Source: Selaginella moellendorffii
Taxonomy: Eukaryota; Plantae; Lycopodiophyta
Length of the DNA stretch: 64,000 nt
NCBI RefSeq assembly: GCF_000143415.4
Contig: NW_003314306.1
Span: 337,087 to 401,086, forward strand
Reading direction: 5' to 3'
Part shown: positions 25,558 through 64,000 of the stretch, piece after piece
Layout: every line of letters begins with the position of its first letter
Numbering within the stretch: position 1 is the stretch's first letter
The notes under the pieces: generated by a model
The model's database searches: none
Seen by the model: only the letters and a program-made list of their open reading frames with translations
What the model was told of the DNA's origin: nothing
Translations under genes and position numbers: made by a program

Positions 25558-27401
25558 ATGGCGGAGGAGGAGGCTTTCAGTGACGCGCTCGCCTTCCCGG
25601 ATGAGCCCCGCAAAGAGATGAGTAGCGGGCGGAATGGGAGCTTGAGGAACAGGAAGAAATGCAAGGATCGTTCGCTGGACTGGCAACGCGAGGAAGAAGC
25701 TGCTCTAGAAAAGGGGGAAAACGGGAGCCATAGCCTTACAGGAGAAGAGGATAGTCACTCAGAGATAAGCGAAATCGAGCAGGCTTCCGACGATGAAATC
25801 GTCCAGCCAGAGCGAGATTCACGACGAGAAAGCTTGGACGGGATCGGCGAGGTCGAGCAAGTTCCCAGGCATGACACCGACGAGACGAGCTCCACAGAGA
25901 CATTAGATGAAGTTGATGGAGGAGAAAGCCACCACCCCGAGGTGAGCTTAGAACCGAGCGAAAGAGACGCGCTCGAGCAGGTTGACACGGACGAAACGAG
26001 CTTCACAGATCGACTAAGAGCTCTTCGTCAAGCTGGAAGTGACCACCAGTCGGAGATAACCGCAGAAGTGATTGGAAGCGAAGAACTCGAGCAAGTTTCC
26101 AAGCGCGACGCCGGGATTTTTTACGACGTTATCCGGCCAGTTTTCATGGATTCAGCAGAAGAAGCTGGCGAGAAGCCTCAAGCAGCGAGGCGAGAAGTTT
26201 ACAAGATGCCGGACAGTGTCGAGAATGGCAACGAGAGCAGTCTCATCTTCTGGCCAGCGAATTTCATCGTCCTTGCCGTGGCCTGGCAGCTCAAGGTCAT
26301 CTTCCTTGCGTGCACCACCGCCGTCTCCACCCTCGGGTTGCTCTACGCCTTCGTCCTCGACCCGGTACAAATGACCAGCGCTGCGGGAAAGAACCTCTCG
26401 GAGCTTTTCAACTCTCGCGTCAAGCCACTCGCGTCGGACTTTGCTCCACGGCTCGCCAGCTTCGTCCAGAGATTTGGATGGGGAGTTTTAGCAGTGACTT
26501 ACGCGCTGCTCATGCTCGCCTTCCTCGTCCTGCCCGTGCTGCTCGTCGAGTACTTCTACGTGACCAAGTTCGTGGAGGTACCTCTCGACGTCAAGGCTCC
26601 GCTCTACTTCAACTACACCGAGGCTCGCCCCAGCGCATACTTTAGATTCATCTCCGAGGCCGGGACTGGCGAAGAGCTTTCACGGTGGCCGCCAGCATTC
26701 TCCTGGGATAAGCTCCGCGTCGGGGTGTCGTTAACTCTCCCTGAGTCAGATTATAACCGGCAACTTGGGATGTTTCAGGTGAGAGCTCACTCTCTTTTCT
26801 TCCTTGCTTTGCTTGCATTTTCTTTCTTCGACTTCAAGCATGTCCTTTTTCCGTGAAGGTGGCAGCGGAGATACTGTCAGCGCGGAACGAAGTCGTCGTC
26901 AGATCCAGTCGCCCGTGCATGCTCCGATTTCAAAGCGTCCCGATACGCTACGCAAGGACGCTCATCTACTCAGTGCCGGTCCTTCTCGACGTGGCCGGGG
27001 AGTACCAAGTCCTGCAGCTGGAAATGATAAACCTGAGACGACCGCGCGCGAGTCCCGTGCACGTCGCCAGCGTGAAAGTTTTGCTGGAGCCGAGAGCTGG
27101 ATTCGGGCCAGGATCTGGTCTTCCGGAACTTTACGTGTCGGAGATCCAGATCCGTGCCGACCTGCCGTGGAAAAAGTCGCTGGTTTACAAGTGGAGGAGG
27201 ACACTCTACGTGTGGAGCGCGACGGTGCTGTTCGTGACCGAGCTTGGCATCGTCCTGTGCTGCTTCCGCCAGCTGCTCATCCCGAAGAAAACGAGGCAGC
27301 GGCAACTCCAGCACAACAATTCTTCGGATCCCCCCTCCACTACAGCGTCCCGAAGAGCGAGAAGTCAAGTGAAGAAGCGCGTTTCGTTCCAGGAAAACTA
27401 G
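25558..27401 (+). CDS. SEIPIN: Seipin (lipid droplet biogenesis), long acidic N-terminus like SEIPIN2/3; exons 25558-26778 and 26859-27401
   Basis: PLYFNYT, LTLPESDYNRQLGMFQ|VAAEILS, SSRPCMLRFQSVPIR, LPELY and a C-terminal TM helix. FFAT-like EEEAFSDA at the N-terminus. Confidence 0.93.
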
Positions 27402-28815
27402 ACCAGGTATGGTTTCGTCTTAAACTTCTCTTTTCTTACACTTATTTTCCAGCTTTGTATGACACGATCAGGTGATATACAATCTTTCTCTCGGGTCTGC
27501 CTTATAGTAGGACCGGTCACGAGCAACGATCGGTACGTTTTTTTATATGCTACGAGAGGGAAAATTTATACCATTGAAGAAGCGAGAGAGATGCGGGAGC
27601 ATCGACGTCAGGATGCATTTACGAGGGTGATGCTGATGTCTGGAGATCACAAAGAGCAAAAACACGGAGAGGCGAAAAAAAAATGGGCGAAACAACGATC
27701 TCGCCATGGACTTTGTGAGTGATTACTTCCATTCATTCCACTTTTGTTCTAACTCTCTCTGTTCTTCCACTCCAGGAACGCGAAAGTAGGAGACCCAGCA
27801 CCGAAAGAAAGGAAAAACTTCGCGATCAGTTACAACCGCATCCCCTTAAGTCGTCTGCAAGCTCTGGACAAATTCTGGGTGGTCTTGGCGGGATTTGCAG
27901 CATTTCCTTTCGCTCATCCTGGCCGTCGAATCCATCCGACGGCAGCCAGCCGAGCACACTTGTCCTATAGAGAAGGTGCTGTAAGGTTTTTTTTGTTTTT
28001 TTTTTTTGGTCCTTGTGAATTTTATTTTTTTTTTGTGTTTACGTGCTTGCTCTGCAGACATGGTTGGTGCCATTGCTGCCTAGCAAGTTGTTCGCCGGTC
28101 ACCTCAAGAACAGGCTTTTGCTCGCTCCTTTTCTCGGCTCTTCCAACTTTTTTCTAAGTGGAAGAGCACTTTGATCCGGAAGCGCCAGTAATCTAATCGC
28201 TAGCTCCAATGCTGCCACGGAGTTTTCTATCAATCCATCGCGAGAGGGGTGTGTTTGGCGCTTTCGATAGCTCACGTCTGGCTAGCCAAGGAGCGCGAGT
28301 TTTTTTTGGAGATCATGGATAGAATTCACAAAGAGTGTTATTTACCTGTGGAATGGAGAGTACAAATTTTTCTTTTCTTTACACGAGAGCGAGGAGGAGA
28401 AACACAAATGCTGCACGCTCGAGAGAATCGAGAGTGTTATTTGGAGGGCGCTATCCTCTGATCGAGAGAACCAAGCGATAGAACCAAAAAGAAAACGTTG
28501 GGAAGAACTACAACGAGAAAACGAGAAAAGGGGAAAAAACTGCTCACAACTTCCACAAACCTGGGGAAAATGCTGCCTCGCCTACAAACAATCTTATGGA
28601 GGAATCGAGATCGCCAAATGGAAGGAGGAGGAAGGAATCCAGCGGAAAGAAAGAAAGAAGTCCAAGGAAGAACGACGAAGAACTCTTCTCCTCCCCGCTT
28701 TTGTGCTGCTGCTACTTATACTAGACCAGTGAAAAAGAATAAAAATCCCTCCTTTCGCTCCAATCCACCCCTCCCCATTCCATTTGGGCGATTCCCTCTT
28801 CTCCCATGCTCCAAT

Positions 28816-29055
28816 CTAGTAGGTCTTGTATGGATCCTCTGCGAGGAGCTGCCTGGTGGTGGCATCCATCTTCAATCCCAGATCCATGACGTGCTGCTGC
28901 TCCGCGAGGGAGAGATCATCCATCTCCATCGCCGAAGACATGGCCCCTGCTCCAATTCGTGCTCCCTGCGCTGCCATGGGCATCGCCGCCGCGATGACAA
29001 TGCCAATCAGCAGCACCAGCGCTGAGATCTTCCTGAGAATCGCCTGCAATGCCAT
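28816..29055 (-). CDS. Small secreted peptide precursor (79 aa), uncharacterised
   Basis: MALQAILRKISALVLLIGIVIAAAMPMAAQG/AR signal peptide, acidic pro-region, C-terminal MDATTRQLLAEDPYKTY*. GC-rich coding style, GA-repeat leader and TATA-like ATAAATA about 110 bp upstream. Confidence 0.75.
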   Translation of the reverse strand: MALQAILRKISALVLLIGIVIAAAMPMAAQGARIGAGAMSSAMEMDDLSLAEQQHVMDLGLKMDATTRQLLAEDPYKTY

Positions 29056-29995
29056 CGCGCCGAAGAGATTTCGCTGCGGGCTGGAAAGAAATTCTTCCCT
29101 CACTCTCTCGCACAGAGCTCTCTCTCTCTCTCCCTGGCGAAATAGGGTAAGCCCAGGGCCGGGTATTTATCTTCTGCAATTACTCCACGTCGAAGAAATT
29201 ACCCAGTCCCTCCCTGGGCCGGGGATTTTCTTCACACACGCTGAGACACGCTCTTTGTTTTTACGTGGGGTAAGTCGCGAAGTCCCGCCATTGGGCCAGC
29301 TGTCAAAGTCTCCTACTGTAACGTAGTTATATGTGTAACTACCATTTTAGGTCATCTTTTACGTTACATTCTACGGAATATTTCCCTGCATGACGACGGC
29401 TGATCTCAGCCGTGGGTTCCTTAGCGTACGGCAGGCGTACGAAGGGGATATTCTTGGGGCATATGCTGATCCCACGGCGGTCGCTGTGATGGAGATGGTT
29501 GTTGCGCCGGCTACGTGCCACGATGGGAACGACGCAACAACGCAAAGTTTTAATTTTTGTGCGACAACGCGTCTATTTTTTTTTTTGGTACTTAGTTCTT
29601 TTCTATTTGGAGTTCTTTTCTTTGGGTTTTTATTCGCTACAACGTGTTTCCAATGGGGACAGCAATGCTTAACTTCAGTGTTTATGGACGAGCTTGGGAA
29701 TTCTGTGTTGGCCTTTTCCTGGAGGGTTGGGCCTTGTCTATAATGAGTGATTTCTTTGGTTGAGACGTGTGTTTGGAGACCTGGCGGTGGTACAAGGAAC
29801 CCTAAAAAATTCCTGGATCTTGGAGCTTTCTAGAAACTTTTGGATGGACCAATTCAAAGCTCTCCCCTTTTCTTAATTCGTAGAAACCCTAATAGGAGGA
29901 ACCCTAAAGCTAGCATTTGCATTTTTCCTATCCTACATTTGATCAGGCTCTCTGCAGGGAATGTCATGAGCTACCATCGATCAATCAACCCTCGG

Positions 29996-30389
29996 TCAGT
30001 ACTGGAGGAACATCCACTTCAAGAGAATGCCTGTCGAAAAGCTCAAAGAACAACCAACCGATCGATCTCTCGATCGCGAGAAAAGCGAGAAAAAGCTAAC
30101 CTTCCCAGCGCGTCGCCTCGGAGCTCACCGCGATCCCGGTCACCAGTCGCGCCGCCGCCGTGGCGCTGTGCTTGGGCACCATGGACGAAATCCCCCTGTG
30201 GATCCTGGAAACAAAATCTCCTTTGTGCTCGATCGATCGAATCCATGCACTGGAAATTCACCTGATCCTGGCGCTCGCCTGCCCCTCCGGCGATGGGATC
30301 GCGATCGATCGCCGCAGTGGCCGCGCGCCTGGAATCCCGAGCTGGGGAAGCCTCCTCAATTCTAGCCGCCTCATCACTCTTGCCGCCAT
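29996..30389 (-). CDS. NFD6/NOXY2-like small mitochondrial protein, paralog A (exons 30389-30262, 30204-30101, 30030-29996)
   Basis: MAARVMRRLELRRLPQLG...ASARIR|IHRGISSMVPKHSATAAARLVTGIAVSSEATRWE|GILLKWMFLQY*. Fits the family motif S[LM]xPxHSAxAxARL with an Arg-rich presequence. Confidence 0.78.
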
Positions 30390-30412
30390 CGCTTTTCTTC
30401 TATAGAGCTTAT

Positions 30413-30426
30413 AAACCCTAGGGTTT
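30413..30426. promoter_or_regulatory. Palindromic double telo-box AAACCCTAGGGTTT in a 49-bp divergent intergenic spacer
   Basis: Perfect 14-bp palindrome giving AAACCCTA on both strands, between ATGs at 30389 (-) and 30439 (+). Confidence 0.8.
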
Positions 30427-30438
30427 TAGACTAGGGCT

Positions 30439-37499: not shown

Positions 37500-40064
37500 A
37501 TTGAGCTCAATCGAAGCTATTGTGGAGACAATATCCTGTCAAGAGAACAGTCTCTATAACTTTTACCAGGCTTGGAACTTAAAGGAAGAGAGAAAAAGGT
37601 TTCCTGGGATTTTAGAATCTTTCACGTATCAATTATCGCAGGAAAATTTCTTTCGTTTAGTCATGTAACATGACTAAACCTCTGGGCTTTCCTCTCTAGT
37701 GAGATTCAGGAAGAACGATAACAGTGGCTTATGTTCTTTCCTAGCAGGTTGTAGATCAAACAGATTCAAGTAGAGCAGTAGCCTCAAGGAGTCTTCATTC
37801 GCAGCAAGCGTATGTTTGATTTTTCTTAGAATATTTCTCATTGTGGCATTTTTGGTCTAGATAGTGGATCTACGTAGAAAGCTTCATCTCACATTGCAAA
37901 TTGCAACATCAAGTAACACCATTTCGATTTCCTTTTACCATGCCAGTTGGTTTTCTGGTGTTCTTTTTCCAATCACAGCAAACAAAATGAAACAGAACGA
38001 AAGCTAGAGCTCCATAAAAAATCAAGCGTACTCGATGCTAGCCCCCTTGAACGTGAAGACTTTCTCCTTGTCCTTCCCGCGCGGCACCAGAGTGACAACG
38101 AGCTTGTCCGCGTCCTTCAAGCCCAAGATCTCGACGTTGGGCTTGATGGAGAAGCGGGCGTTGGTGGTCCGAGTGCTCGACTCGGTCATCCCGGGCATGA
38201 AGTGGGGGATGTTGTAGAAAGAGCCAACGTACTCGGCGCAGGAGAGCGTTGTGGTCTCGTTGGCCTCAGGGAGATTGATGAACACGTTGAAGTTAGTGTT
38301 ATTCTGCATCCCAACCACCATCTCTTCCAGGACCAGGAGCTCGTCCGAAGCGCTGCCTTTGGGCTGCGCCACCGTGATCGTCAGCGGGCCCGCTCCAACC
38401 TTGACAGGCTCGGCGTTCTGGGACGAGGATTTCACGAGTGGATACTCAGCCGCCATAGCAGTAGCTCCAGGAACCAACGAAGCAACGATCGAACTCTTGG
38501 GCTGCGCGAAGGCCGTCTTTGCGAGCGGCAGTGGCTTGTAGTTGATCCAGACCTTGTCCTGGGGCATGGACGCGTACTTGTACTTGAGCTTCGTCTGGTT
38601 GTCGATGGAATCTTTCACCTTGACGCGAACGAGGTCCTGGTTCTCATCGAAGAAGAGGAACTCGGTGTTGAGGTAGTCGGCGTCCGTGAAGTCCTGGTTT
38701 CCCAGGGACCTCCACACGTCCCACATCCTGTCCACGTTACCGTGGTGGCAGTAGAAGAGTGGATCCTTCCCGGCAGAGTAGAAGTTGCCCAGGTCCTCGC
38801 CATTGGGGTTATTGGGGCTGCCGCCAAAGATGTGCACGGCCGTGTGTGGGGCTTTCTCCAGAGATCCATCGGCACCGTTATTGTTCCCTTTCCTGCATAA
38901 GACATGGCTCCGTCACCTTTTTCTGGCCATGCACACGTACCTTATGGGAGCGCCGAAGAAGGCGTCCCGGAGCTTGACCTTAGCGACGTTGTTGTACATG
39001 ACGGAGATGTTGTCCTGGCGGATCTGATCGTCGGTCTTGTAGGTGGGCTCGCCGAAGCTGGGGTCGACGCCGGGCGCGTAGCCGAGATCCACTCGCGCGG
39101 GCGCGTAGTTTGCCTCGTTGCGATTGGCGTCGAAGATGGGGGTGCCCTCGCGCCGAAACATCTCCGGGATGTAGCTCCCCCCCTCCTGGTTGTCCCAGTT
39201 CCAAAACGGCAGCGCGAAGGTTGGATCGTTGATCAAGCTGCCCAGGATCTTCTCGTGGTAGTAGAGGTACCAGCGGTGCCACGGCAGGAAGAGCCAGTTG
39301 AAGTGGATCTGGAGCGTTGACTTTGGATCGCCCTCCTGGCGGTAGCCGAAGTTGCAGTAGACGCAGTGGACGTTTGCCTGCTGCCGGAAGCTCCGGGGAT
39401 CATCCGAGGGAAGCGCGCGCATCTTGGCGTAGGCCTCGTTGTACTTCTGGATGTAGTCCTCGTCCACGAGATGGGCGGCGGGGCGGGTGCGCATGGGGCC
39501 GGTGTCGGGCTTGAAGTCGATGGTGTCGCGCTTGGGCTTGGGCGGGCAGCACGCCACGAAGGTGTTGGTGTTGGCGATGTTGGCGGGCTGGCAGCGCTTG
39601 AAGGTGGGAGATCCCACGGGCTCGGCGAGCGCGGGACCAGTAGGGGACGCTGCGAGCGAAGCTCCGCCGGCGATTGTTCCCGCCAGGAGCTCGCGGCGAT
39701 CGATGATCGAGGCCGGAGTGGAGCTACCTTTCTTGGAGGGGAAAGAGGGATTACCAGACTCCCCTGTTGCTGCATTGGCTTCTTTCCTGGCATTGGCGGT
39801 GATCTTGAGCGTACCCCGGGAGCGATTGGGCAGAAGTGGGCATCGGCTCCGGTGCTGGAGCTTGACGCGATCGAGCGAGAGTGCCGCGGAAGACATGCCC
39901 AGCAGCGAATCCATGCTGGATGAGAGATTCCAAACCTCGACTGACGACGTCGTAGGAAGCGTACCTTTTTAAAGGACGAACAAGCTCACATGACTCTCGT
40001 GGGAGTAGTGGCGATAATATTTCAGACCAAAGTGATCGGACTTTGATCCACGAGAACCCCGTGT
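37500..40064 (-). repeat. Left arm of a ~2.5-kb inverted repeat containing PPO
   Basis: Reverse complement aligns with 44272-46806, including promoter, CDS, intron and ~500 bp of 3' flank. Confidence 0.93.
38022..39914 (-). CDS. PPO: Polyphenol oxidase copy 1; exons 39914-38941 and 38892-38022
   Basis: Transit peptide plus twin-Arg lumenal signal (DRRELL...PALA). CuA HCVYC...IHFNWLFLPWHRWYLYYHE; CuB PHTAVH...DPLFYCHHGNVDRMW. DWL-like (DYL) and KFDV-like (NFNV) C-terminal domains; 48-nt intron. Confidence 0.96.
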
Positions 40065-44272: not shown

Positions 44273-46806
44273 ACACGGGGTTCTCGTGGATCAAAATGTC
44301 CGATCACAATGGACAGCTTTGGTCCCTTCCGATGTGAAATATTATCTCAGCCCAGTACTCCCACGAGAACCATGTGAACTCGTTCGCCGTTTAAAAAGGT
44401 ATCGCTTCCCAATGCGTTGATAGTTGAATCTCTCATCCAGCATGGATTCGCTGCTGGGCATGTCTTCCGCGGCACTCTCGCTCGATCGCGTCAAGCTCAA
44501 GCACCGGAGCCGATGCCCACTTCTGCCCAATCGCTCCCGGGGTACGCTCAAGATCACCGCCAATGCCAGGAAAGAAGCCAATGCAGCAACAGGGGAGTCT
44601 GGTAATCCCTCTTTCCCCTCCAAGAAAGGTAGCTCCACTCCGGCCTCGATCATCGATCGCCGCGAGCTCCTGGCAGGAACAATCGCCGGCGGAGCTTCGC
44701 TCGCGGCGTCCCCTACTGGTCCCGCGCTCGCCGAGCCCGTGGGATCGCCCACCTTCAAGCGCTGCCAGCCCGCCAACATCGCCAACACCAACACCTTCGT
44801 GGCGTGCTGCCCGCCGAAGCCCAAGCGCGACACCATCGACTTCAAGCCCGACACCGGCCCCATGCGCATCCGCCCCGCCGCCCATCTCGTGGACGAGGAC
44901 TACATCCAGAAGTACAACGAGGCCTACGCCAAGATGCGCGCGCTCCCCTCGGATGATCCCCGGAGCTTCCGGCAGCAGGCAAACGTCCACTGCGTCTACT
45001 GCAACTTCGGCTACCGCCAGGAGGGCGATCCAAAGTCAACCCTCCAGATCCACTTCAACTGGCTCTTCCTGCCGTGGCACCGCTGGTACCTCTACTACCA
45101 CGAGAAGATCTTGGGCAGTTTGATCAACGATCCAACCTTCGCGCTGCCGTTTTGGAACTGGGACAACCAGGACGGGGGGAGCTACATCCCGGAGATGTTT
45201 CGGCGCGAGGGCACCCCCATCTTCGACGCCAATCGCAACGAGGCGAACTACGCGCCCGCGCGAGTGGATCTCGGCTACGCGCCCGGCGTCGACCCCAGCT
45301 TCGGCGAGCCCACCTACAAGACCGACGATCAGATCCGCCAGGACAACATCTCCGTCATGTACAACAACGTCGCTAAGGTCAAGCTCCAGGACGCCTTCTT
45401 CGGCGCTCCCATAAGGTACGTGTGCATGGCCAGAAAAAGGTGACGAGCCATGTCTTATGCAGGAAAGGAAACAATAATGGTGGCGATGGATCCCTGGAGA
45501 AAGCCCCACACACGGCCGTGCACATCTTTGGTGGCAGCCCCAATAACCCCAATGGTGAGGACCTGGGCAACTTCTACTCGGCCGGGAAGGATCCACTCTT
45601 CTACTGCCACCACGGTAACGTGGACAGGATGTGGGACGTGTGGAGGTCCCTGGGAAACCAGGACTTCACGGACGCCGACTACCTCAACACCGAGTTCCTC
45701 TTCTTCGATGAGAACCAGGACCTCGTTCGCGTCAAGGTGAAAGATTCCATCGACAACCAGACGAAGCTCAAGTACAAGTACGCGTCCATGCCCCAGGACA
45801 AGGTCTGGATCAACTACAAGCCACTGCCGCTCGCAAAGACGGCCTTCGCGCAGCCCAAGAGTTCGATCGTTGCTTCGTTGGTTCCTGGAGCTACTGCTAT
45901 GGCGGCTGAGTATCCACTCGTGAAATTCTCGTCCCAGAACGCCGAGCCTGTCAAGGTTGGAGCGGGCCCGCTGACGATCACGGTGGCGCAGCCCAAAGGC
46001 AGCGCTTCGGACGAGCTCCTGGTCCTGGAAGAGATGGTGGTTGGGATGCAGAATAACACTAACTTCAACGTGTTCATCAATCTCCCTGAGGCCAACGAGA
46101 CCACCACGCTCTCCTGCGCCGAGTACGTCGGCTCTTTCTACAACATCCCCCACTTCATGCCCGGGATGACCGAGTCGAGCACTCGGACCACCAACGCCCG
46201 CTTCTCCATCAAGCCCAACGTCGAGATCTTGGGGTTGAAGGACGCGGACAAGCTCGTTGTCACTCTGGTGCCGCGCGGGAAGGACAAGGAGAAAGTCTTC
46301 ACGTTCAAGGGGGCCAGCATCGAGTACGCTTGATTTTTTATGGAGCTCTAACTTTCGTTCTGTTTCATTTGGGTTCCTGTTATTGGAAAAAGAACACCAG
46401 AAAGCCAGCTGGCATGGTAAAAGGAAATCGAAATGGTGTTACTTGATGTTGCAATTTCCAATGTGAAGATAAAGCTTTCTACGTAGATGCACTATCTAGA
46501 CCAAAAATGCCACAATGAGAAGTATTCTAAGAAAGATCAAACAACGCTTCCAACGAATGAAGACTCCTTGAGGCTACAGCTCTACTTGAATCTGTTTGAT
46601 CTACAACCTGCAAGGAATCTCACTTGAGAAAAAATCTTCATAGGCCGGGAAAGCCGACTAAACGCTGAGAAAATTGATACATGAAAGATTCTAAAATCCC
46701 AGGAAACCTTTTTCTCTCTTCCTGTACGTTCCAAGCCTGGTAAAAGTTATAGAAACCGTTCTCTTGACAGGATATTGTCTCCGGAATAGCTTCGATTGAG
46801 CTCAAA
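44272..46806 (+). repeat. Right arm of the PPO inverted repeat
   Basis: Reverse-complement match to 37500-40064. Confidence 0.93.
44442..46333 (+). CDS. PPO: Polyphenol oxidase copy 2; exons 44442-45415 and 45463-46333
   Basis: Same domains as copy 1 with only a handful of amino-acid differences; 47-nt GT-AG intron. Confidence 0.96.
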
Positions 46807-51470: not shown

Positions 51471-52258
51471 GAAGAGGAGTCAAGTTACTTCGATCTGGCC
51501 TGGAAGAATTGAGCTCTTAACCATTTTGTGATGAAAACAAAGCATATTCTAACTGATGCTTATCTAACGGCTTAAAGATATGTATTTTAAATTGGAATTA
51601 ATTAATTTAGAATTCAAGTATTTTAATATCTTTTAGATTATCTTGTTTATTAGTAAAAATGTTGCGATAGTCTTAGTCTAAAAATGTTGCGATAATATTT
51701 TTTTTATTTCCCAATAATTATATAAAAAAGTATTTAATATAATTTTACATTTAAATATATTCATGTATATTCTCTATATTTAACCAAAAAACATTATTAC
51801 ATAAAATAATTAACTAGTTATTTTAGTTTTCTTGTTCAGCATTATGTATAGCAAGGAAAGATATTTTTAAATTAGTAAACAATTATATAATTAACTATCT
51901 ATTTTTAATTTATAAATTATTAAATTTTAAAAATTAAAAATTACAAGATTTTAACCTTAGAAAAATAAAAACTACAATCAACACTATTTATATCTTGTTT
52001 ATTTTGTATTTATGATTGTTTGAAAGTCCTCATAAAACTTATAATAAATTTTTGTTAAGTTTAGCAAATATATAAAATATCTATTTAGTTTATAAAAGAC
52101 CAAATCAATAAAAAAAATTTGTTTCTTTTTTACAAAGTATTTAACATTTTTAAATTGTGCTTTTCACTTAAAAATAAAAATCTAAATTATTAAGTCTTAT
52201 AATTGTTAAATATAGATATACAAATTACTTATCATGTAACCATTAAAGACTATATAGA

Positions 52259-52516
52259 GTAATAAAACTTAATAAATTTATTTCTTAAAGCTACCATAGA
52301 AGTCATACATGCTTTATGGAAAAAAATATTCTACAAAAGTCAAAACCTTTTTATTTTTATTTTTCTACTTTTAGTTTTTATATATATAGGGTAATAAAAC
52401 TTAATAAATTTATTTCTTAAAGCTACCATAGAAGTCATACATGCTTTATAGAAAAAAATATTCTACAAAAGTCAAAACCTTTTTATTTTTATTTTTCTAC
52501 TTTTAGTTTTTATATA
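52259..52516. repeat. Recent 132-bp tandem duplication
   Basis: gtaataaaacttaataaatttatttcttaaagctaccatagaagtcatacatgc... at 52259 and 52391, nearly identical. Confidence 0.95.
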
Positions 52517-52653
52517 CTTTGTTGCATATTACTTTTATTATTTTTTTTAAGGTCTCTAAGTATATATGTTCCATTAAATAGAGGTTTGTTGGACACTTTT
52601 CCAAAACTTAGAGAACTAGCAACACTTGGGCAAATTTAATCATCCTACATCAT

Positions 52654-52728
52654 TATATATATATACACACAGACATACATACATACATACATATACACAC
52701 ACATATATGTATGTATGTATGTATATAT
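52654..52728. repeat. Compound (TA)n/(CATA)n/(TATG)n microsatellite, partly self-complementary
   Basis: tatatatatatacacacagacatacatacatacatacatatacacacacatatatgtatgtatgtatgtatatat. Confidence 0.9.
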
Positions 52729-52817
52729 TACCCTACCTTGGTAATACATTAATTAAAATACTATAGCATAATTTGGGATTGAATTTGATCCATAGAGTAT
52801 AAACCTTAATTAATATA

Positions 52818-53998
52818 CAATTTATCCCTAGAGGGCAAAGTTTTCTAGCAATGTTTTGCTCAATGTTTGAGATTATGTTTTTGTTTTTATTCTATCACTT
52901 TTCTTTTCTTTTCTAGATTTGCTATAGTTTTTTGCAAGATCTAGGATTATATCTTTTTGAAATGTTCTTCTTTTAATCTTTATTTTATTCTCTTCTTTTG
53001 CCATACCACATTATTATCAATCAAGGAGCATATCACTTTAGGTTGCTAATGCTATTCCATTGGATTGAATTTTTAGTGTTATAAGGTGTAATTATATTAG
53101 TGTTGCTCTAGTCTTTGATATGTACAAACTTAAATGGATTCTAGAATATGATAAGAAGATTAATTATTATAAAGATAACTTTGAAGATGAGTTGAAGATT
53201 TGACAATCTTTCAATTTGCCATTTAATGCTTTCTTTTTGCCTTACCAGCTATATTGACTTTTTACCGTGTGGCAATAAAGAGAGAATGTCCATAAAGATT
53301 GATTGACATTTTACGCTTTTCCAATCTTTTTTCTTATTTTTTATATCTAGTATTTCTTCTTTATCTACAATATTTCCTTTTTCTGACATGTTAATCATTT
53401 ATGACTTTTATAACTTTCATTCTCAATCTAGTGTTGAGCTAAATGTTTTTTATCATACTTATATTATGTGTGAAGTTTAAGAATCTTACTTTTATTTCTT
53501 TGGCGAAATCTTTGATTAGTTCTTATGTTGAGTATACCACTATTCCAAGGTTGACCACTTTTGCTAGAATTTTAGTTAAGTGTATATCCCTAATTATTAA
53601 TGTTATTAAGAGCCTTTTCTTTATTATTATTGCTAAGGAGTTTATGTGTTCTTTTTAAGAATATGGACATTTTTATTGATTTTCTTGTTTCATGTGTTGA
53701 ATAGTATTTTAAAGAGGTTAAGTGATGTGAATCTTTTATTTATATTATGATCATGCCCTACAATACCAAAAGCTTGATCCAATTGAGTAGCACGAACAGC
53801 CTCAAGTGACATATTCCTTAATCAATGATGATGTGGCATGGCAAAAGAAGAAAATGCAATAGCTATAATCCTAAACCTAGAGAAAAGTTAATATAAATCT
53901 AGATTTAAAAGAGAAAGAAACAAATAAGAATAAAAGTATGATCCCAAACACTAGAACAAAGCATTGCTAAAAATCTTTGCCCTCTTGAAACAAATTGC
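52818..53998. mobile_element. Old AT-rich dispersed repeat with degenerate inverted ends (52818-53100 vs 53740-53998)
   Basis: gagggcaaagttttctagcaatgttttgctcaatgtttgagattatg is inversely matched by atcccaaacactagaacaaagcattgctaaaaatctttgccctc; a direct homolog lies at 63110-64000. Confidence 0.6.
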
Positions 53999-55362
53999 AA
54001 TAGTTCTCAAAACCAAATTAAGTCCTCAATAAGATATAATTTTATATATTTATAGACCTGACAATACAAAACTAAAAATCTTAAAATTTATATTATATTT
54101 ATCCTTATCTTAATTTTGTTCATTTATGCACTAAAACCATGGGGAAGACATTCTTGGACATCCTTGTGGACAAGTCCTCGAAAGAAAAATCTCTCAGCCT
54201 TTCACCATCCATTTCAATTTACTTAAAGGTTCATAAATTATAAACATGTTTATAATTTGTAAACATCAGTGAATTTTGTGGTAGCAGCATTTTACTACCC
54301 GCCACAATATTTGTAGTTCATTTTTACTACCAATTACTGTAAGCTAATATATTTGTAGTACAAAATAGCTATGACTAAAGTATATTCCTATTATGCATGA
54401 ATACCTAAAAAATAAACTTAAAAACAAGATTTTAGTGATCACAACAAAGTTGACTGTTAGATACATTCTAATTTTAATAAATATAAAGTAAACTATAATT
54501 ACTGTAAATGAGATTTTATTATATAGAATAAGTAATGCGCTCATTCAAATTTGCATTTAAATTTGTCTAATGTGCATTCATAAAAAAGTTATAACTTTTT
54601 TAACCCCTTCTACATTTCTAAGTTGGAGTTGGCTTAGTTTCTGTGAAGTAGCCAGTAGCCAATCCACCAACTTGCTACATAATTTAATCAACATGTGCAG
54701 CATAGTAGTGTTACTAGGCACTCCACAACCTCACAGTGCTCATCTGAAACATCCTTACCTCGGTGTGCATCTGCAGAGGTGTTTGATCGGCTTCCTTTTT
54801 GGGATGAGAATGCTGCTATGGCTTCCTTGCCCAACAAAATTTGAGAGACAGTTTCAAGATCTCTCCTGCATGGTTGCCAAGGGCTGGGACGCTCTCAAGA
54901 ACGTTTTGTTTTTGGTTTTATGTTGAATTTCATCTCCTAAAACCTTTCTTACCTCAACTTATAGTCTTGTTTATATTATGGCGGGAGGAACCCTTGAACA
55001 CAGGTGTTTGGTGTACGAGTTCTATATCACAGATTAATATATCAACGAGAGATTTCTAAGCTCCAGGCGCAAATTTCTGCTCAAGATTTCCATAACGACT
55101 TCTTATTTCTCCCTTGTAAAAAGGAATCACTTCTTTATTAAGGATAAGATTTTTATTGTATGAAATATCTTTTTTTGAATCATCTCATGTAAGGATTTCT
55201 TTTTCCATCTGATTGTATGTGTAAGATTTCCTCCTTTTACAATCTTGTAAATTCCTATGATTCTTATATACACGTAGTTACGAAGTCATTTATTCGCCCT
55301 CTTTTCAAAATTTCACGTAAATAAGTGAAAATAAGTACTTAAAACTTCTGCTTTCGTCTCTA

Positions 55363-59719: not shown

Positions 59720-62700
59720 AAGAGTATTTAAACCACTACTTTAAACACTAACCTAGCAACTATTTGTCGGTAGAGACCATGAAACCACGACCACACACCT
59801 ATATAACGTAAATCACTAAGCCATATAAGCATCAGGAAACTAAGGAAAACTAATGAATTAATTGCAACCACATTTACAATTGCAAAATGTTTGAAATAGT
59901 GAGGATAGAAGTAAATCATACCCCATATCATGTCAAAAGCTTGATATGAGCCTCTAGCAACATGCTTTATCAACAGCATGGCAAGGGAATGTAATTATAT
60001 CTAGCAAAAAGCATGAATAAATTTAGATTGAATGGGAAGAATAAGGGAATCAAAGAAGAATAATCTAGAAGGCGAATAAGGAAAGCCTCTGCAAAGCTTT
60101 ATGTGATAGTTATCACTCCTTAAATTTGCTATCTAATTTTATTTCTCTGCATTTTCATCTATCTTTCTCAACCATTTATTTTATCTCAGTTTGAGCCACT
60201 TCTTCTTGCAATGTTTTTCCTTTTATCTTTTTTTCCTAATGTGTTAATCTTAGTTAAGTGCTTTCAATCCCTCACCATTTTTTATTCTTCCACATTATTT
60301 CTTCCTCAAATTTTTTTCTTTCTCATTGTTACTTCCCTGACTCAATATATATCCTCCATGACAAATTCTCCATAACCTGATATGCATCAGCTAACCTATT
60401 TGCTCAAATGAATCCACTTATGGGGATTATCACTATCAAAGCACACCCACTTCGAAAATATCTTCTAGAAGCCTCTTAGCCTCATCCATGTTAAGGAGAT
60501 TTGCAATAACAATCCATTAAGCTATCATAAGTTGCCACCACATCCAGCCCACAATTCTTCTTTATCATAGAGGTAAAGGTCATCTATGATACTATAATAT
60601 ACCATTTCTTTTAAGAGCTTGTTGACCTGGGTCAACAAGGCTGGGAAAAAGCCAGATACCTCTAGCTAAAACACTTTTGACTTGTCTACATTTGCAAGTT
60701 GAAGAAAATCCTTGAGAAGATTTTCTTTTCTTTTTCTTTCTTTTCTTTGCTTGCACCACTTTTCTTACCTTTTTCAGTAAAGCATGAGCTTGGATTTGTG
60801 GTATGACTCTTCTCATCTGGAAGCTCATGCACTTTTCACTTCATTTTCAAGGGTCCTAGGTTTTCACTATATCATTCCACTCCATTTGCCATATCCATCA
60901 TTCTAGATCACTCACAATCACAATCCATTCATTCAACTATTCTCTCCAACATGTTTATTTCTTGCTATAGTTGCCCACCCAATTTAAATATACTTCTCAC
61001 TAAACATACATCATACATAGCAAAAAGCAGTAAAAACTAATATATCAAACTTAAGATAGGATGTAGATTGTCTTGAAGCAGCAAATTTGCATAAATACAA
61101 GACATGTAGCAAATGATTTATGAATGCTGGTCACACTTGATGCACACAAGAGGCCAACCATGATTATGGACATTGTACTCAAACCCACAAACATCAACAA
61201 TTATGGCAAATAGATAGAGCCTTATGTTGGTAGCAATTCGATTCAAAGAGATGATACTGCAGGACCATGATAAGAGAGAGACACTTGATGCTTGAACGTT
61301 AGATCCCTTGCTATGGTGGGGTATACGAGGGAGGAATCAAATGGAAGTGAAGGTCACCAAACACCATGGAAAAAGAGGCAAAGCTGGGAGATATAGACCT
61401 AGATGTTCTAAAGAGGAGATGACCATAGCAACCTCTCTTAGAGGGTGGAGAGCATTCCTAGGCTGAAGGTAGTATGAGAATAAGAAGTAAATAGCACCAT
61501 GGGTTTTTTATAATAGTTTATAAGGGATATTGATAATGTATATAATTATTTCATCAAACCCACAAACTGGCATATCAATTGGGAATTACACTTTATATAT
61601 TTGTGTTTCTTAGGTATAGTAATTTTCTACATAGACATGCATATTTACAAGCTTATAAAGTTTATTTTAAATATAATTATTTGAAGTGACATATTAATAA
61701 AAACATAGTGTGAGTGCCTAGAATAAGAAAAGGGAATATAGTAAAGTGCATATCAATTAGCTTATTTATAGGAGGGAATGGTCTAAATTGAAATTCTACT
61801 ATACTAATATTAGTATATGGCATCATAGCCATACATTTGGACCACACATCATCCCCTCATCTTAGAAGGGTGCAAGATAGTCAAGGTTCTTTAGATAATT
61901 TAGGATTTAGAGGAACATTAGGAGAAGGCATTAGTGGATTTATAGATGGTGCTAGTTGTTCTTGATCCCTTTGATCCTTTTGATCAACTCTAATAACATA
62001 AAGAAGGTCGTCCTCAAGGCTATATTAAGAATGTAAATGCCAAAACAGTAAATCATTAGTAAATGATGTAGAATTCTCAAACCCTTTACAAAAATTTCAA
62101 ATCCACACCTCAATCTTTTGAGCCTTACAAACCTCATCAAGAGAAGTTAAATCTTACTCCACACCTTGTAAATATTAAACATCAAGTATAACAATCACCA
62201 ATAGCATGGAATCTTCATCTAAAAAATTCATAAATATTGGAACAACAAACTCATTAGGAACAAAATAAGAGAGTGAAAAAGGGAGAGGAACTTGACAAAG
62301 GGTATTATCATTAGCTATACAACTCCTTGAATGATGAACAACCTCAAAATCATATATCTGAAGCTTTAGAGTCTATCAAACAACACTACCAACCAAATTC
62401 TTCCATTTTAATAATGAAATAACCATAGCATTATTACCTTCAAGCAACCATGTAAATATGCAGCTTTTTGAAACCCTAAATTACTATTAAACACTCCTTT
62501 ATTGCGGAGTAATTCACCTCTGCTAATTGTAATGTATAACTAATATATATAATGGGATGATGTTGATTAAGCACTTGTACTCTATTGCATTAAGACACCC
62601 CCAAGATTGATATCCAAGCATCTACATGCAAAATGAAAGGTTGAGTGTAATGAAGAGGAGTTGTTAATAACTCTTTAAAATCCATAAATGTTTGTTTGCG

Positions 62701-63109
62701 GTCTTCAAACTAAATAAAAAATGACATTAACAATTTCAGCAACATTTGCAATGGTGTAGTGCGATCAGAAAGATGATCAAAGAATGATTGAAATATTGCA
62801 TATTACTCAAAAAGTGTGCACATCATTCACACACTAGGGAATTTGAAATAAACACAAGTTTGTTAGGATCATGAAAAATATAGTATCTAAGATAAGTTAT
62901 GTTTTTGGACCTAAACACGCATTTTAACCACTTTAGCTTTATACCAACTTCCTGCAACTAATTTAACACTTTCCAAATATCACAAATAACATCACTAATA
63001 GTACTATAGTATATGAACCATCTATTTGGGATTAAATCTAGTCTATCTATTTTTTTATGGAAGAAATTAATATATTCCAAGCACTCATATTGGTGGAAGT
63101 GAGGGCATC

Positions 63110-64000
63110 GCAATTTGTACCTAAAGAGCAAAATTTATTAGTAATGCTTTGCTTTAGTGTTTGAGATTATGCTTTTTGTTATTATTTCTTCATTCTTTTT
63201 TAGATTTAGATCTATATTAGATTTTTGCAAGATTTAGAATTCTAGTTATCACTGTGCTTAGACTTGTTTTTTCTTTTGATCTTTATTGCATTTTTTTCTT
63301 CTACCATATTACCCTATCATCAATGAAAGAGTATATCACTTGAGGCTGTTGATGTTACTTCGTTAAATTGAGCTTTTGGTGCTATAAGGTGTGATTATGT
63401 TAATGTTGCACGCATCTTTGATGTGTTATCATTTCCAACTTTCGTGGGATGTGATTATATGGCTTGTCCTATTCTTAATGTTCTACCATCTCTCATTGAT
63501 GTGAAGTGTGATCGTGACATCAATTAACAAGCTATAGATGATGTAGTTTGATTTTTGAAGAATATTCAAAAATTGAGTTTTATGTAAAGACGATGTTTAC
63601 AAGCTTGAATGGATTTTGGATTGTGATGAGGAACTTGATTATTATGGAGGTAGCTTTGGAGATGAATTTAAGATTTCACATATCAATCTTTCAATTTGCC
63701 ATTTAATCCTTTTTCTTTACCTTCTATTCTTTCTTAACTTTTTCTTATTTCTCAGCCTGAGCCACTTATTCGTTCCTCATCTGTAATGTTTCCTTTTTAT
63801 TGCATATTGGTCATTTGTGACTTTTATGATTCTCATTCTTAATTTAGTGTTGAATTAAATATTTTTTATCCTCATATTAATCTAGATTTCAAGCATATGT
63901 GGGAAGTTGAGTGTTTCTTTAGCAAAGTCTTTAATCAATTTTAATATAAAGTATTATCTTATTTGAAAGGTTGAGTAATTTTGGCTAAAAGTTTGGGTTC
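63110..64000 (+). mobile_element. Second copy of the dispersed repeat seen at 52818-53700, running off the window
   Basis: Shared blocks tgtttgagattatg, tatcactt, tataaggtgt.attat, caatctttcaatttgccatttaat, tcattct.aat.tagtgttga. Confidence 0.65.

Follow-up and report, generated by a model that had tools for sequence, protein, structure and literature searches.

An unannotated Selaginella gene from an unnamed, conserved vascular-plant family of small secreted precursor-like proteins

The open reading frame (ORF) of Selaginella moellendorffii described here is, as judged from its sequence and that of its homologs, an unannotated member of an unnamed and conserved vascular-plant family of small secreted precursor-like proteins. 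By analogy to known plant systems, its product would most likely be a prepropeptide from which a short D-P-Y peptide is released. In its full form, a reading to which we give slightly better than even confidence, this would be a functional, intronless gene of a secreted-prepropeptide family that arose no later than the divergence of lycophytes from seed plants, and its precursors would be cut at an RxLL site to yield a D-P-Y signalling peptide. Lycophyte and conifer lineages, both of which contain members of the family, separated roughly 400 million years ago.

An intronless gene in an annotation gap

The window analyzed here comprises 64,000 nt of S. moellendorffii DNA (NW_003314306.1, positions 337,087 to 401,086). 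At 28816–29055 of the window, it contains a complete coding sequence of 79 codons plus TAG on the minus strand (ATG at 29055–29053, TAG stop at 28818–28816), which encodes its 79-aa product without an intron and was delimited by translation, mapping to the public record and comparison with homologs. On the record GL377610.1 (GCA_000143415.2), the ORF is located at 365902–366141, window positions being converted to record positions by an offset of 337086; in exact-protein look-ups, the intronless xyloglucan fucosyltransferase ORF and the PPR ORF of the window proved to be exact products of GL377610.1 genes. The initial annotation had described a 79-aa intronless ORF with a signal peptide, an acidic pro-region and the ending MDATT-RQLL-AEDPYKTY-stop, and this is exactly what we found.

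In the public annotation of GL377610.1, no gene is called between the end of the seipin gene (28083) and the next gene (30439), and the peptide ORF is consequently unannotated. This 2.35-kb stretch (28084–30438), followed by an annotated 206-aa gene from 30439 on, is thus gene-free on record yet contains the ORF. The seipin gene itself (25558–28083; annotated product of 678 aa) converges on the peptide gene and ends about 730 nt short of its stop codon, so that the 3' UTRs of both genes may approach each other or overlap. Neither tblastn with all family members nor an Rfam scan gave any match to a second copy or to a known RNA family, respectively, within the window.

Exact look-ups of the 79-aa product and of six alternative starts returned no record in a collection of 15 billion proteins, and neither these look-ups nor the public annotation yielded a transcript or a called product for the gene in Selaginella. 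The lack of a gene model, a transcript-derived product or an exact protein on record would fit a silent relic, i.e., an unexpressed ORF or a young pseudogene of a family that is real elsewhere. We regard this as extremely improbable, since the ORF is intact, has retained all family-invariant residues as well as the conserved start and stop, and is preceded by a TATA-like box and a leader. Moreover, annotation routinely overlooks small ORFs, commonly including those that encode peptide precursors (Furumizu et al., PMC8462819).

The region upstream of the ATG (29056–29400, minus strand) was assigned as 5' leader and putative promoter on the basis of consensus matches. It features a TATA-like ATAAATA at 29164–29170, 115 nt upstream of the ATG, a GA repeat in the leader downstream of this box (at about 29118–29133), and an ACGTGG at 29185–29190, 135 nt upstream of the ATG, besides three further ACGT cores. 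The "many ACGT cores" reported for this region correspond to a modest excess of about 2.5-fold over the shuffled expectation, with four cores in the 345 nt upstream of the ATG versus 1.3 expected by shuffling (P about 0.04) and five in the 500 nt upstream (P about 0.05). This excess is, however, marginal, and no such enrichment is present upstream of two homologous genes.

Two further features of the window were observed outside of this locus. The segments 37889–39930 and 44426–46466 form an inverted duplication of about 2 kb with 98–99% identity, whose inner ends lie about 4.5 kb apart. A polyphenol oxidase gene resides in this duplication and is annotated in the left arm with Tyrosinase, PPO1_DWL and PPO1_KFDV domains. 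The arrangement looks like the result either of a very recent inverted duplication of the gene or of faulty assembly. Furthermore, 52001–54000 and 60001–64000 are strongly AT-rich (25–34% GC compared to 45–60% in the remaining window) and probably represent repeats or intergenic DNA.

Family members and conserved precursor architecture

A phmmer search with the ORF against 1.84 billion protein representatives resulted in four matches (E 9.8e-7 to 4.1e-4), all of which cover the non-signal part of the query and end at one common point. Profile searches added P0006, P0007, P0008, P0009 and P0010 at E 1e-8 to 1e-35, with P0008 representing a cluster of six near-identical variants. When the ORF alone served as query, a word-indexed protein search gave no match, and the family surfaced only with the exhaustive HMMER search, which relied on a single short query; the profile searches are, in turn, bounded by the word index. 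Altogether, about ten distinct family sequences of 79–105 aa are present in the databases, and their similarity shows the ORF, at the level of sequence, to be a real conserved gene and more than a chance reading frame.

Among these relatives, four are paralogs of the clubmoss Diphasiastrum complanatum and one comes from the conifer Cryptomeria japonica; in the databases, all of them are labelled "hypothetical protein". A further clade, ending in DPYSLT, is represented by contigs of about 1 kb in five SRA-run assemblies and in the JGI sample 3300032468, and does not occur in any NCBI-annotated proteome. One of these contigs, from ERR550389, terminates in a poly(A) run and can thus be considered an mRNA, and the clade also includes a homolog on one genomic contig of 25.9 kb from a JGI sample (L004), which is gene-poor and has 34% GC over 11 kb; together with the lack of the clade in annotated proteomes, this speaks against a grass as its source. 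As in Selaginella, the gene is intronless in Diphasiastrum (L005), in Cryptomeria and on L004. No family member was found by database searches in annotated angiosperms, ferns or bryophytes, and two family-profile scans of JGI metagenome contigs gave 172 pattern matches each, none of which was confirmed. The homologs thus do not overturn the initial proposal, the R-x-L-L site and the Tyr-containing tail being kept from lycophytes to a conifer, and it is through homologs that expression of the family is seen.

Several public models of these homologs are inconsistent. The model of P0003 (Cryptomeria GLJ55645.1) probably begins 26 residues too early, as it is the second Met that lines up with the start of the other members. 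In Diphasiastrum, P0005 (KAJ7518273.1) represents an isoform of 178 aa that extends the P0002 gene upstream, and P0004 (KAJ7529756.1) is a 39-aa fragment beginning at an internal Met of P0006. On the transcript level, the 5' UTR of the P0009 mRNA (L003 1–305, JGI 3300032468) contains about four tandem copies of a ~60-nt unit (…ggtaggtctcgagttcgag…cagaagcagagcaa), which is present as a single copy in the orthologous transcript L002.

Alignment of the family (A4) revealed a common layout consisting of a signal peptide, a variable linker, an acidic block, an R-x-L-(L/F) motif and D-P-Y close to the stop, matching the generic layout of small secreted precursors with less than 120 aa, an N-terminal hydrophobic core, a variable pro-region and a conserved motif near the C-terminus. 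In Selaginella, residues 1–30 (28966–29055, minus strand) are predicted to form the signal peptide, as suggested by hydropathy, by a helix modelled with AlphaFold2 for residues 2–24 and by the layout of the homologs. It features a basic n-region (RK), a hydrophobic core peaking at residues 10–21 (best 12-residue Kyte-Doolittle mean of 3.2) and small residues ahead of the likely cleavage site AQG|AR around residue 30, whose position was derived from hydropathy and the -3/-1 rule. All members possess such a hydrophobic core near the N-terminus, ending in AQG, VRG, VWG, ADG, SEA or MAG.

A core of 18–20 hydrophobic residues could also act as a signal anchor, which is a point against the secretion reading. 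The family might then consist of type II membrane micro-proteins with an uncleaved N-terminus and the acidic C-terminal part facing the lumen or apoplast, and both the long hydrophobic cores (17–20 residues) and the modelling of residues 2–24 as one helix would agree with this. Such an anchor appears improbable, because the small residues at -3/-1 (AQG, VRG, VWG, ADG, SEA, MAG) followed by a polar region are typical of cleaved signal peptides and the N-terminal sequence evolves fast, with a dN/dS of 0.5–0.6.

Downstream of the predicted cleavage site, residues 31–42 (28930–28965) form a low-complexity Gly/Ala-rich linker, which is predicted to be disordered and varies among the homologs both in sequence and in length (about 10–30 residues). 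It is followed by the acidic Gln-rich block of residues 43–59 (MEMDDLSLAEQQHVMDL; 28879–28929, minus strand), the most conserved part of the family, with the consensus (G/S)-M-E-V-D-D-L-S-(L/F)-x-(E/Q)-Q-Q-x-V-x-D-(L/M) and with E44, D47, L48, S49, Q53, Q54 and D58 invariant in ten sequences. About eight poorly conserved residues separate this block from R-x-L-(L/F), which precedes the tail in every member and corresponds in Selaginella to R-Q-L-L (residues 68–71; 28843–28854, minus strand), a candidate S1P/SBT6.1-type subtilase site matching both RXXL and RXLX as defined previously (PMC4983112).

The C-terminal tail AEDPYKTY (residues 72–79; 28819–28842, minus strand) is the predicted source of the mature peptide and carries the invariant D74-P75-Y76 at 28828–28836. 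After R-x-L-(L/F), all members have one to three variable residues, then D, P and Y, which are invariant in the ten sequences, and then x-(T/L) with zero to two further residues, so that the stop lies two to four residues behind the conserved Tyr throughout the family. The tails following the basic site are AEDPYKTY, TKDPYYTKY, AKDPYSTNY, TTDDPYHTKY, EQDPYHT, AKDPYSTY and ADPYSLT, and share the pentapeptide D-P-Y-x-(T/L) as common core. A conserved PYxxY, as anticipated in the initial annotation, is not what the family retains, since P0007 and all sequences of the DPYSLT clade lack the final Tyr. Behind the predicted signal peptide, the Selaginella precursor contains no Cys; the same applies to all but one member, and no homolog has more than one.

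The C-terminal block is under purifying selection: dN/dS is 0.18–0.19 in the C-terminal 38 codons versus 0.51–0.62 in the N-terminal part, as estimated from the two pairs of the closest trio with sufficient divergence (dS about 0.32). At the level of sequence, a constrained C-terminal module combined with a faster evolving N-terminus is the usual prepropeptide pattern. An AlphaFold2 model built from an eight-sequence alignment (pLDDT 64, pTM 0.28) has no compact fold and shows the signal helix (2–24), a disordered stretch (25–49, with pLDDT below 50 for 29–42), a helix at 50–72, which starts with residues 50–59 of the acidic block, and a free tail (73–79). The tail AEDPYKTY was modelled as non-helical at low confidence.

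Comparison with known peptide families

With respect to its class, the ORF had initially been proposed to represent either an undescribed short peptide class or a minimal RALF relative; our comparisons, based on Pfam HMMs and motif inspection for RALF and phytosulfokine (PSK), support the short peptide class, while the relationship to RALF found no support. RALF precursors likewise have an acidic pro-region and an R-x-L-L site of the S1P/SBT6.1 type, which is directly followed by a Tyr-containing sequence. However, the ORF and eight members gave no RALF match (PF05498) in an hmmscan against Pfam-A at E up to 10, and a PDB profile search returned no RALF chain and just chance XPB matches at E above 0.2. 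The RALF mature domain of ~50 residues with four Cys (two disulfides) is absent, as only eight residues follow the cleavage motif in Selaginella, and over 500 nt past the stop none of the three frames encodes a Cys-rich or RALF-like sequence, so that the reported absence of a Cys-rich body, also beyond the stop, is borne out. Instead of YISY, the tail reads x(1-3)-D-P-Y-x-(T/L)-x(0-2), with the second Tyr absent in P0007 and the DPYSLT clade.

The RRxL-type S1P site is indeed shared, as R-x-L-(L/F) occurs in all members, yet this motif is common to unrelated S1P substrates and therefore not diagnostic of RALF (PMC4983112). The idea that a RALF-like pro-segment has been kept could consequently not be maintained: what is common is a four-residue protease motif, with no RALF Pfam match, no Cys and an acidic block (residues 43–59) apart from the RxLL site (residues 68–71), put at 24 residues from it and not adjoining. 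A nonsense-truncated RALF pseudogene, named at the outset as the finding that would overturn the proposal, is ruled out, because the position of the stop is conserved across lineages and all homologs end at a common place, 7–10 residues past the site.

In RALF precursors, the junction reads R-R-I-L-A-T-x-K-Y-I-S-Y, and the R-R-L-L-A-K-D-P-Y-S-T-Y of Cryptomeria P0003 resembles it; acidic residues upstream of the site are found in both alike. A minimal RALF relative, in which the Cys-rich body would be lost while the pro-segment would persist together with the RRxL site and the first part of the YISY helix, could account for these similarities. Considering the lack of RALF matches in the Pfam and PDB profile searches, of Cys after the signal peptide and of any RALF-like sequence past the conserved stop, together with the distant acidic block, which has its own strongly conserved sequence, and the non-conserved second Tyr of YxxY, we consider this very improbable.

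A second comparison concerns PSK, whose precursors have a characteristic size, a core near the C-terminus, an Asp before this core and an RxxL-type site. The family shares several of these traits with the PSK prepropeptides of 80–100 aa. In both, the precursor has a signal peptide and, very near its C-terminal end, a Tyr-containing core with the size of a pentapeptide, which is closely preceded by an Asp and, a few residues earlier, by a basic RxxL-type site; a few C-terminal residues may be trimmed. In contrast, its core is D-P-Y-x-(T/L) and not Y-I-Y-T-Q, with one conserved Tyr instead of two, and the Cys pair of the PSK pro-region is missing, its place being taken by the acidic MEVDDLS...QQQ block in an intronless gene. 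The criterion for a PSK core, Y-(I/V)-Y-T-(Q/N) directly after Asp, does not describe the D-P-Y-x-(T/L) of the family, in which a single conserved Tyr has Pro at -1, and phytosulfokine (PF06404) was rejected as no PSK match was obtained at E up to 10 in the eight members scanned. The earlier statement that the ORF is not PSK agrees with these results, as the family lacks YIYTQ, an Asp adjacent to the core and a match to PF06404 alike.

A very divergent PSK member, whose YIYTQ core would have drifted to PY-x-T, is still conceivable in view of the precursor size, the near-C-terminal place and size of the core, the preceding Asp and the RxxL-type site upstream, and non-canonical PSK-like cores were proposed in bryophytes (PMC8462819). 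We nevertheless assign a low probability to it: besides the lack of a Pfam match in eight members at E up to 10, the single conserved Tyr without Asp directly before it and the pro-region without the conserved Cys pair, conifers hold canonical PSK besides the D-P-Y family (PMC8462819).

The DY-type sulfated peptides (PSY, RGF/GLV and CIF/TWS1) were rejected as well, because their N-terminal Asp-Tyr dipeptide is absent. D-P-Y is invariant and D-Y occurs in none of the tails, in agreement with the exclusion of the PSY/RGF/CIF type made earlier. A likeness to RGF/GLV/CLEL precursors is proposed for the maturation, i.e., a cut by Golgi SBT6.1 at RXXL/RXLX followed by Asp-dependent trimming that leaves Asp first (PMC7162652, PMC4983112). 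The peptides as such are different, with RGF peptides of 13–18 residues starting with D-Y and having a Pro/His/Asn-rich end, compared to a core of 5–7 residues in the D-P-Y family with a D-P-Y start and another ending.

Broader searches gave no further assignment. A protein-language-model search, in which scores under 0.9 were taken as leads, ranked animal neuropeptide prohormones at up to 0.82, below three unnamed bacterial clusters (0.83–0.86). Organ_specific (PF10950), a lead at 0.76, was rejected because no Pfam match was obtained in the ORF or eight members. The Pfam scans at E up to 10 (ORF and eight members) gave lone chance matches to ATP-synt_J, PT-VENN and DUF2628, and a profile search of the PDB found no sequence match for the family. 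In the paper library searched, no paper contains the motif strings of the family and no description was found among the new secreted-peptide families of Selaginella or gymnosperms; likewise, the list of peptide families of non-flowering plants given by Furumizu et al. (PMC8462819) contains nothing resembling the D-P-Y motif.

Predicted processing and candidate D-P-Y peptide

Every step of processing, modification and signalling of the precursor is inferred here by analogy to characterized systems. The N-terminal signal peptide would direct the precursor into the ER and be removed around residue 30, leaving a propeptide of ~49 residues, whose conserved acidic helix may act as a recognition or escort element. 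In the Golgi, an S1P/SBT6.1-type subtilase could then cut after RQLL71 and free the eight-residue tail, by analogy to RALF23 and GLV/CLEL precursors. RXXL and RXLX are the canonical motifs of SBT6.1, which processes the RALF23 and GLV1 precursors (PMC4983112), and for CLEL/RGF the SBT6.1 cut is followed by a post-Golgi, Asp-dependent N-terminal maturation leaving Asp first (PMC7162652). As one to three variable residues separate RxL(L/F) from the invariant Asp, a comparable Asp-dependent trimming is probable in the D-P-Y family; trimming to D74 would result in a PSK-sized D-P-Y-x-(T/L) peptide, here DPYKTY or DPYKT. This peptide of 5–6 residues, DPYKT(Y), would be secreted and act as an extracellular signal.

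The octapeptide AEDPYKTY, put forward in the initial annotation as the released product, is in this context supported insofar as the Tyr-containing tail is conserved, whereas the variable spacing of one to three residues between RxLL and DPY makes it just one possible product among others. Similarly, the proposed sulfation of the tail Tyr is possible, although not favoured on the basis of the sequence. Plant TPST was reported to require Asp directly on the amino side of Tyr (PMC7162652). In the alignment A4, D-P-Y is invariant and Pro always intervenes between Asp and Tyr, which renders sulfation of the tail doubtful. On the other hand, PSK is sulfated on its second Tyr although no Asp adjoins this residue, so that sulfation stays conceivable in the D-P-Y family as well. 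The D-P-Y peptide might carry a non-canonical modification, such as sulfation of a Tyr that is not adjacent to Asp or hydroxylation of the Pro.

The main rival to a released tail is a small secreted protein that is not cleaved at all. Here, the whole mini-protein of ~45–50 residues or its acidic helix would be the product, e.g., a small acidic protein of the apoplast or the ER/Golgi lumen binding a partner or cations, with the acidic block as functional element and DPY as part of an interface. In fact, the block GMEVDDLS(L/F)xQQQxVxD(L/M) comprises seven of eleven invariant columns and is kept more strongly than the tail, which would be unusual if the tail alone were bioactive and is a point against the released-tail reading. 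Moreover, the helix 50–72 in the AlphaFold2 model passes continuously through the RQLL site, and the entire 38-residue C-terminal region is under purifying selection. However, the confidence of this model is low (pLDDT 56–70) and no compact fold is predicted (pTM 0.28), Cys residues that could stabilize a secreted mini-protein are missing, the spacing of one to three residues between RxLL and DPY is more in keeping with a linker that is trimmed away than with a rigid interface, and RxL(L/F), which is invariant in the family, is a classic site for subtilases. Overall, we consider an uncleaved mini-protein rather unlikely and prefer the cleaved prepropeptide.

A more far-reaching interpretation of the cleaved prepropeptide is that of an ancient hormone family of vascular plants predating the lycophyte-euphyllophyte split, in which an S1P-released, PSK-sized and Cys-free D-P-Y-x-(T/L) peptide, possibly with a non-canonical modification, would act via its own receptor; the family would have been retained in lycophytes and conifers, whereas no annotated angiosperm proteome yielded a member. 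We put this forward tentatively, as an attractive possibility with less than even confidence.

Nearly all plant peptide hormones have been discovered in angiosperms. As their counterparts in non-flowering plants are sought by known motifs, families that are absent from angiosperms or too diverged in them stay invisible. The D-P-Y family, which is unannotated, unnamed and conserved between anciently separated lineages, is a concrete candidate for such an invisible family. It offers a clear candidate processing site, and its predicted product of 5–8 residues is cheap to synthesize. Even if the precursor were left uncleaved, it would represent a new conserved family of secreted mini-proteins. If the peptide is active, it would add a new class of ligands and raise the question of its receptor and of why annotated proteomes of flowering plants show no counterpart.
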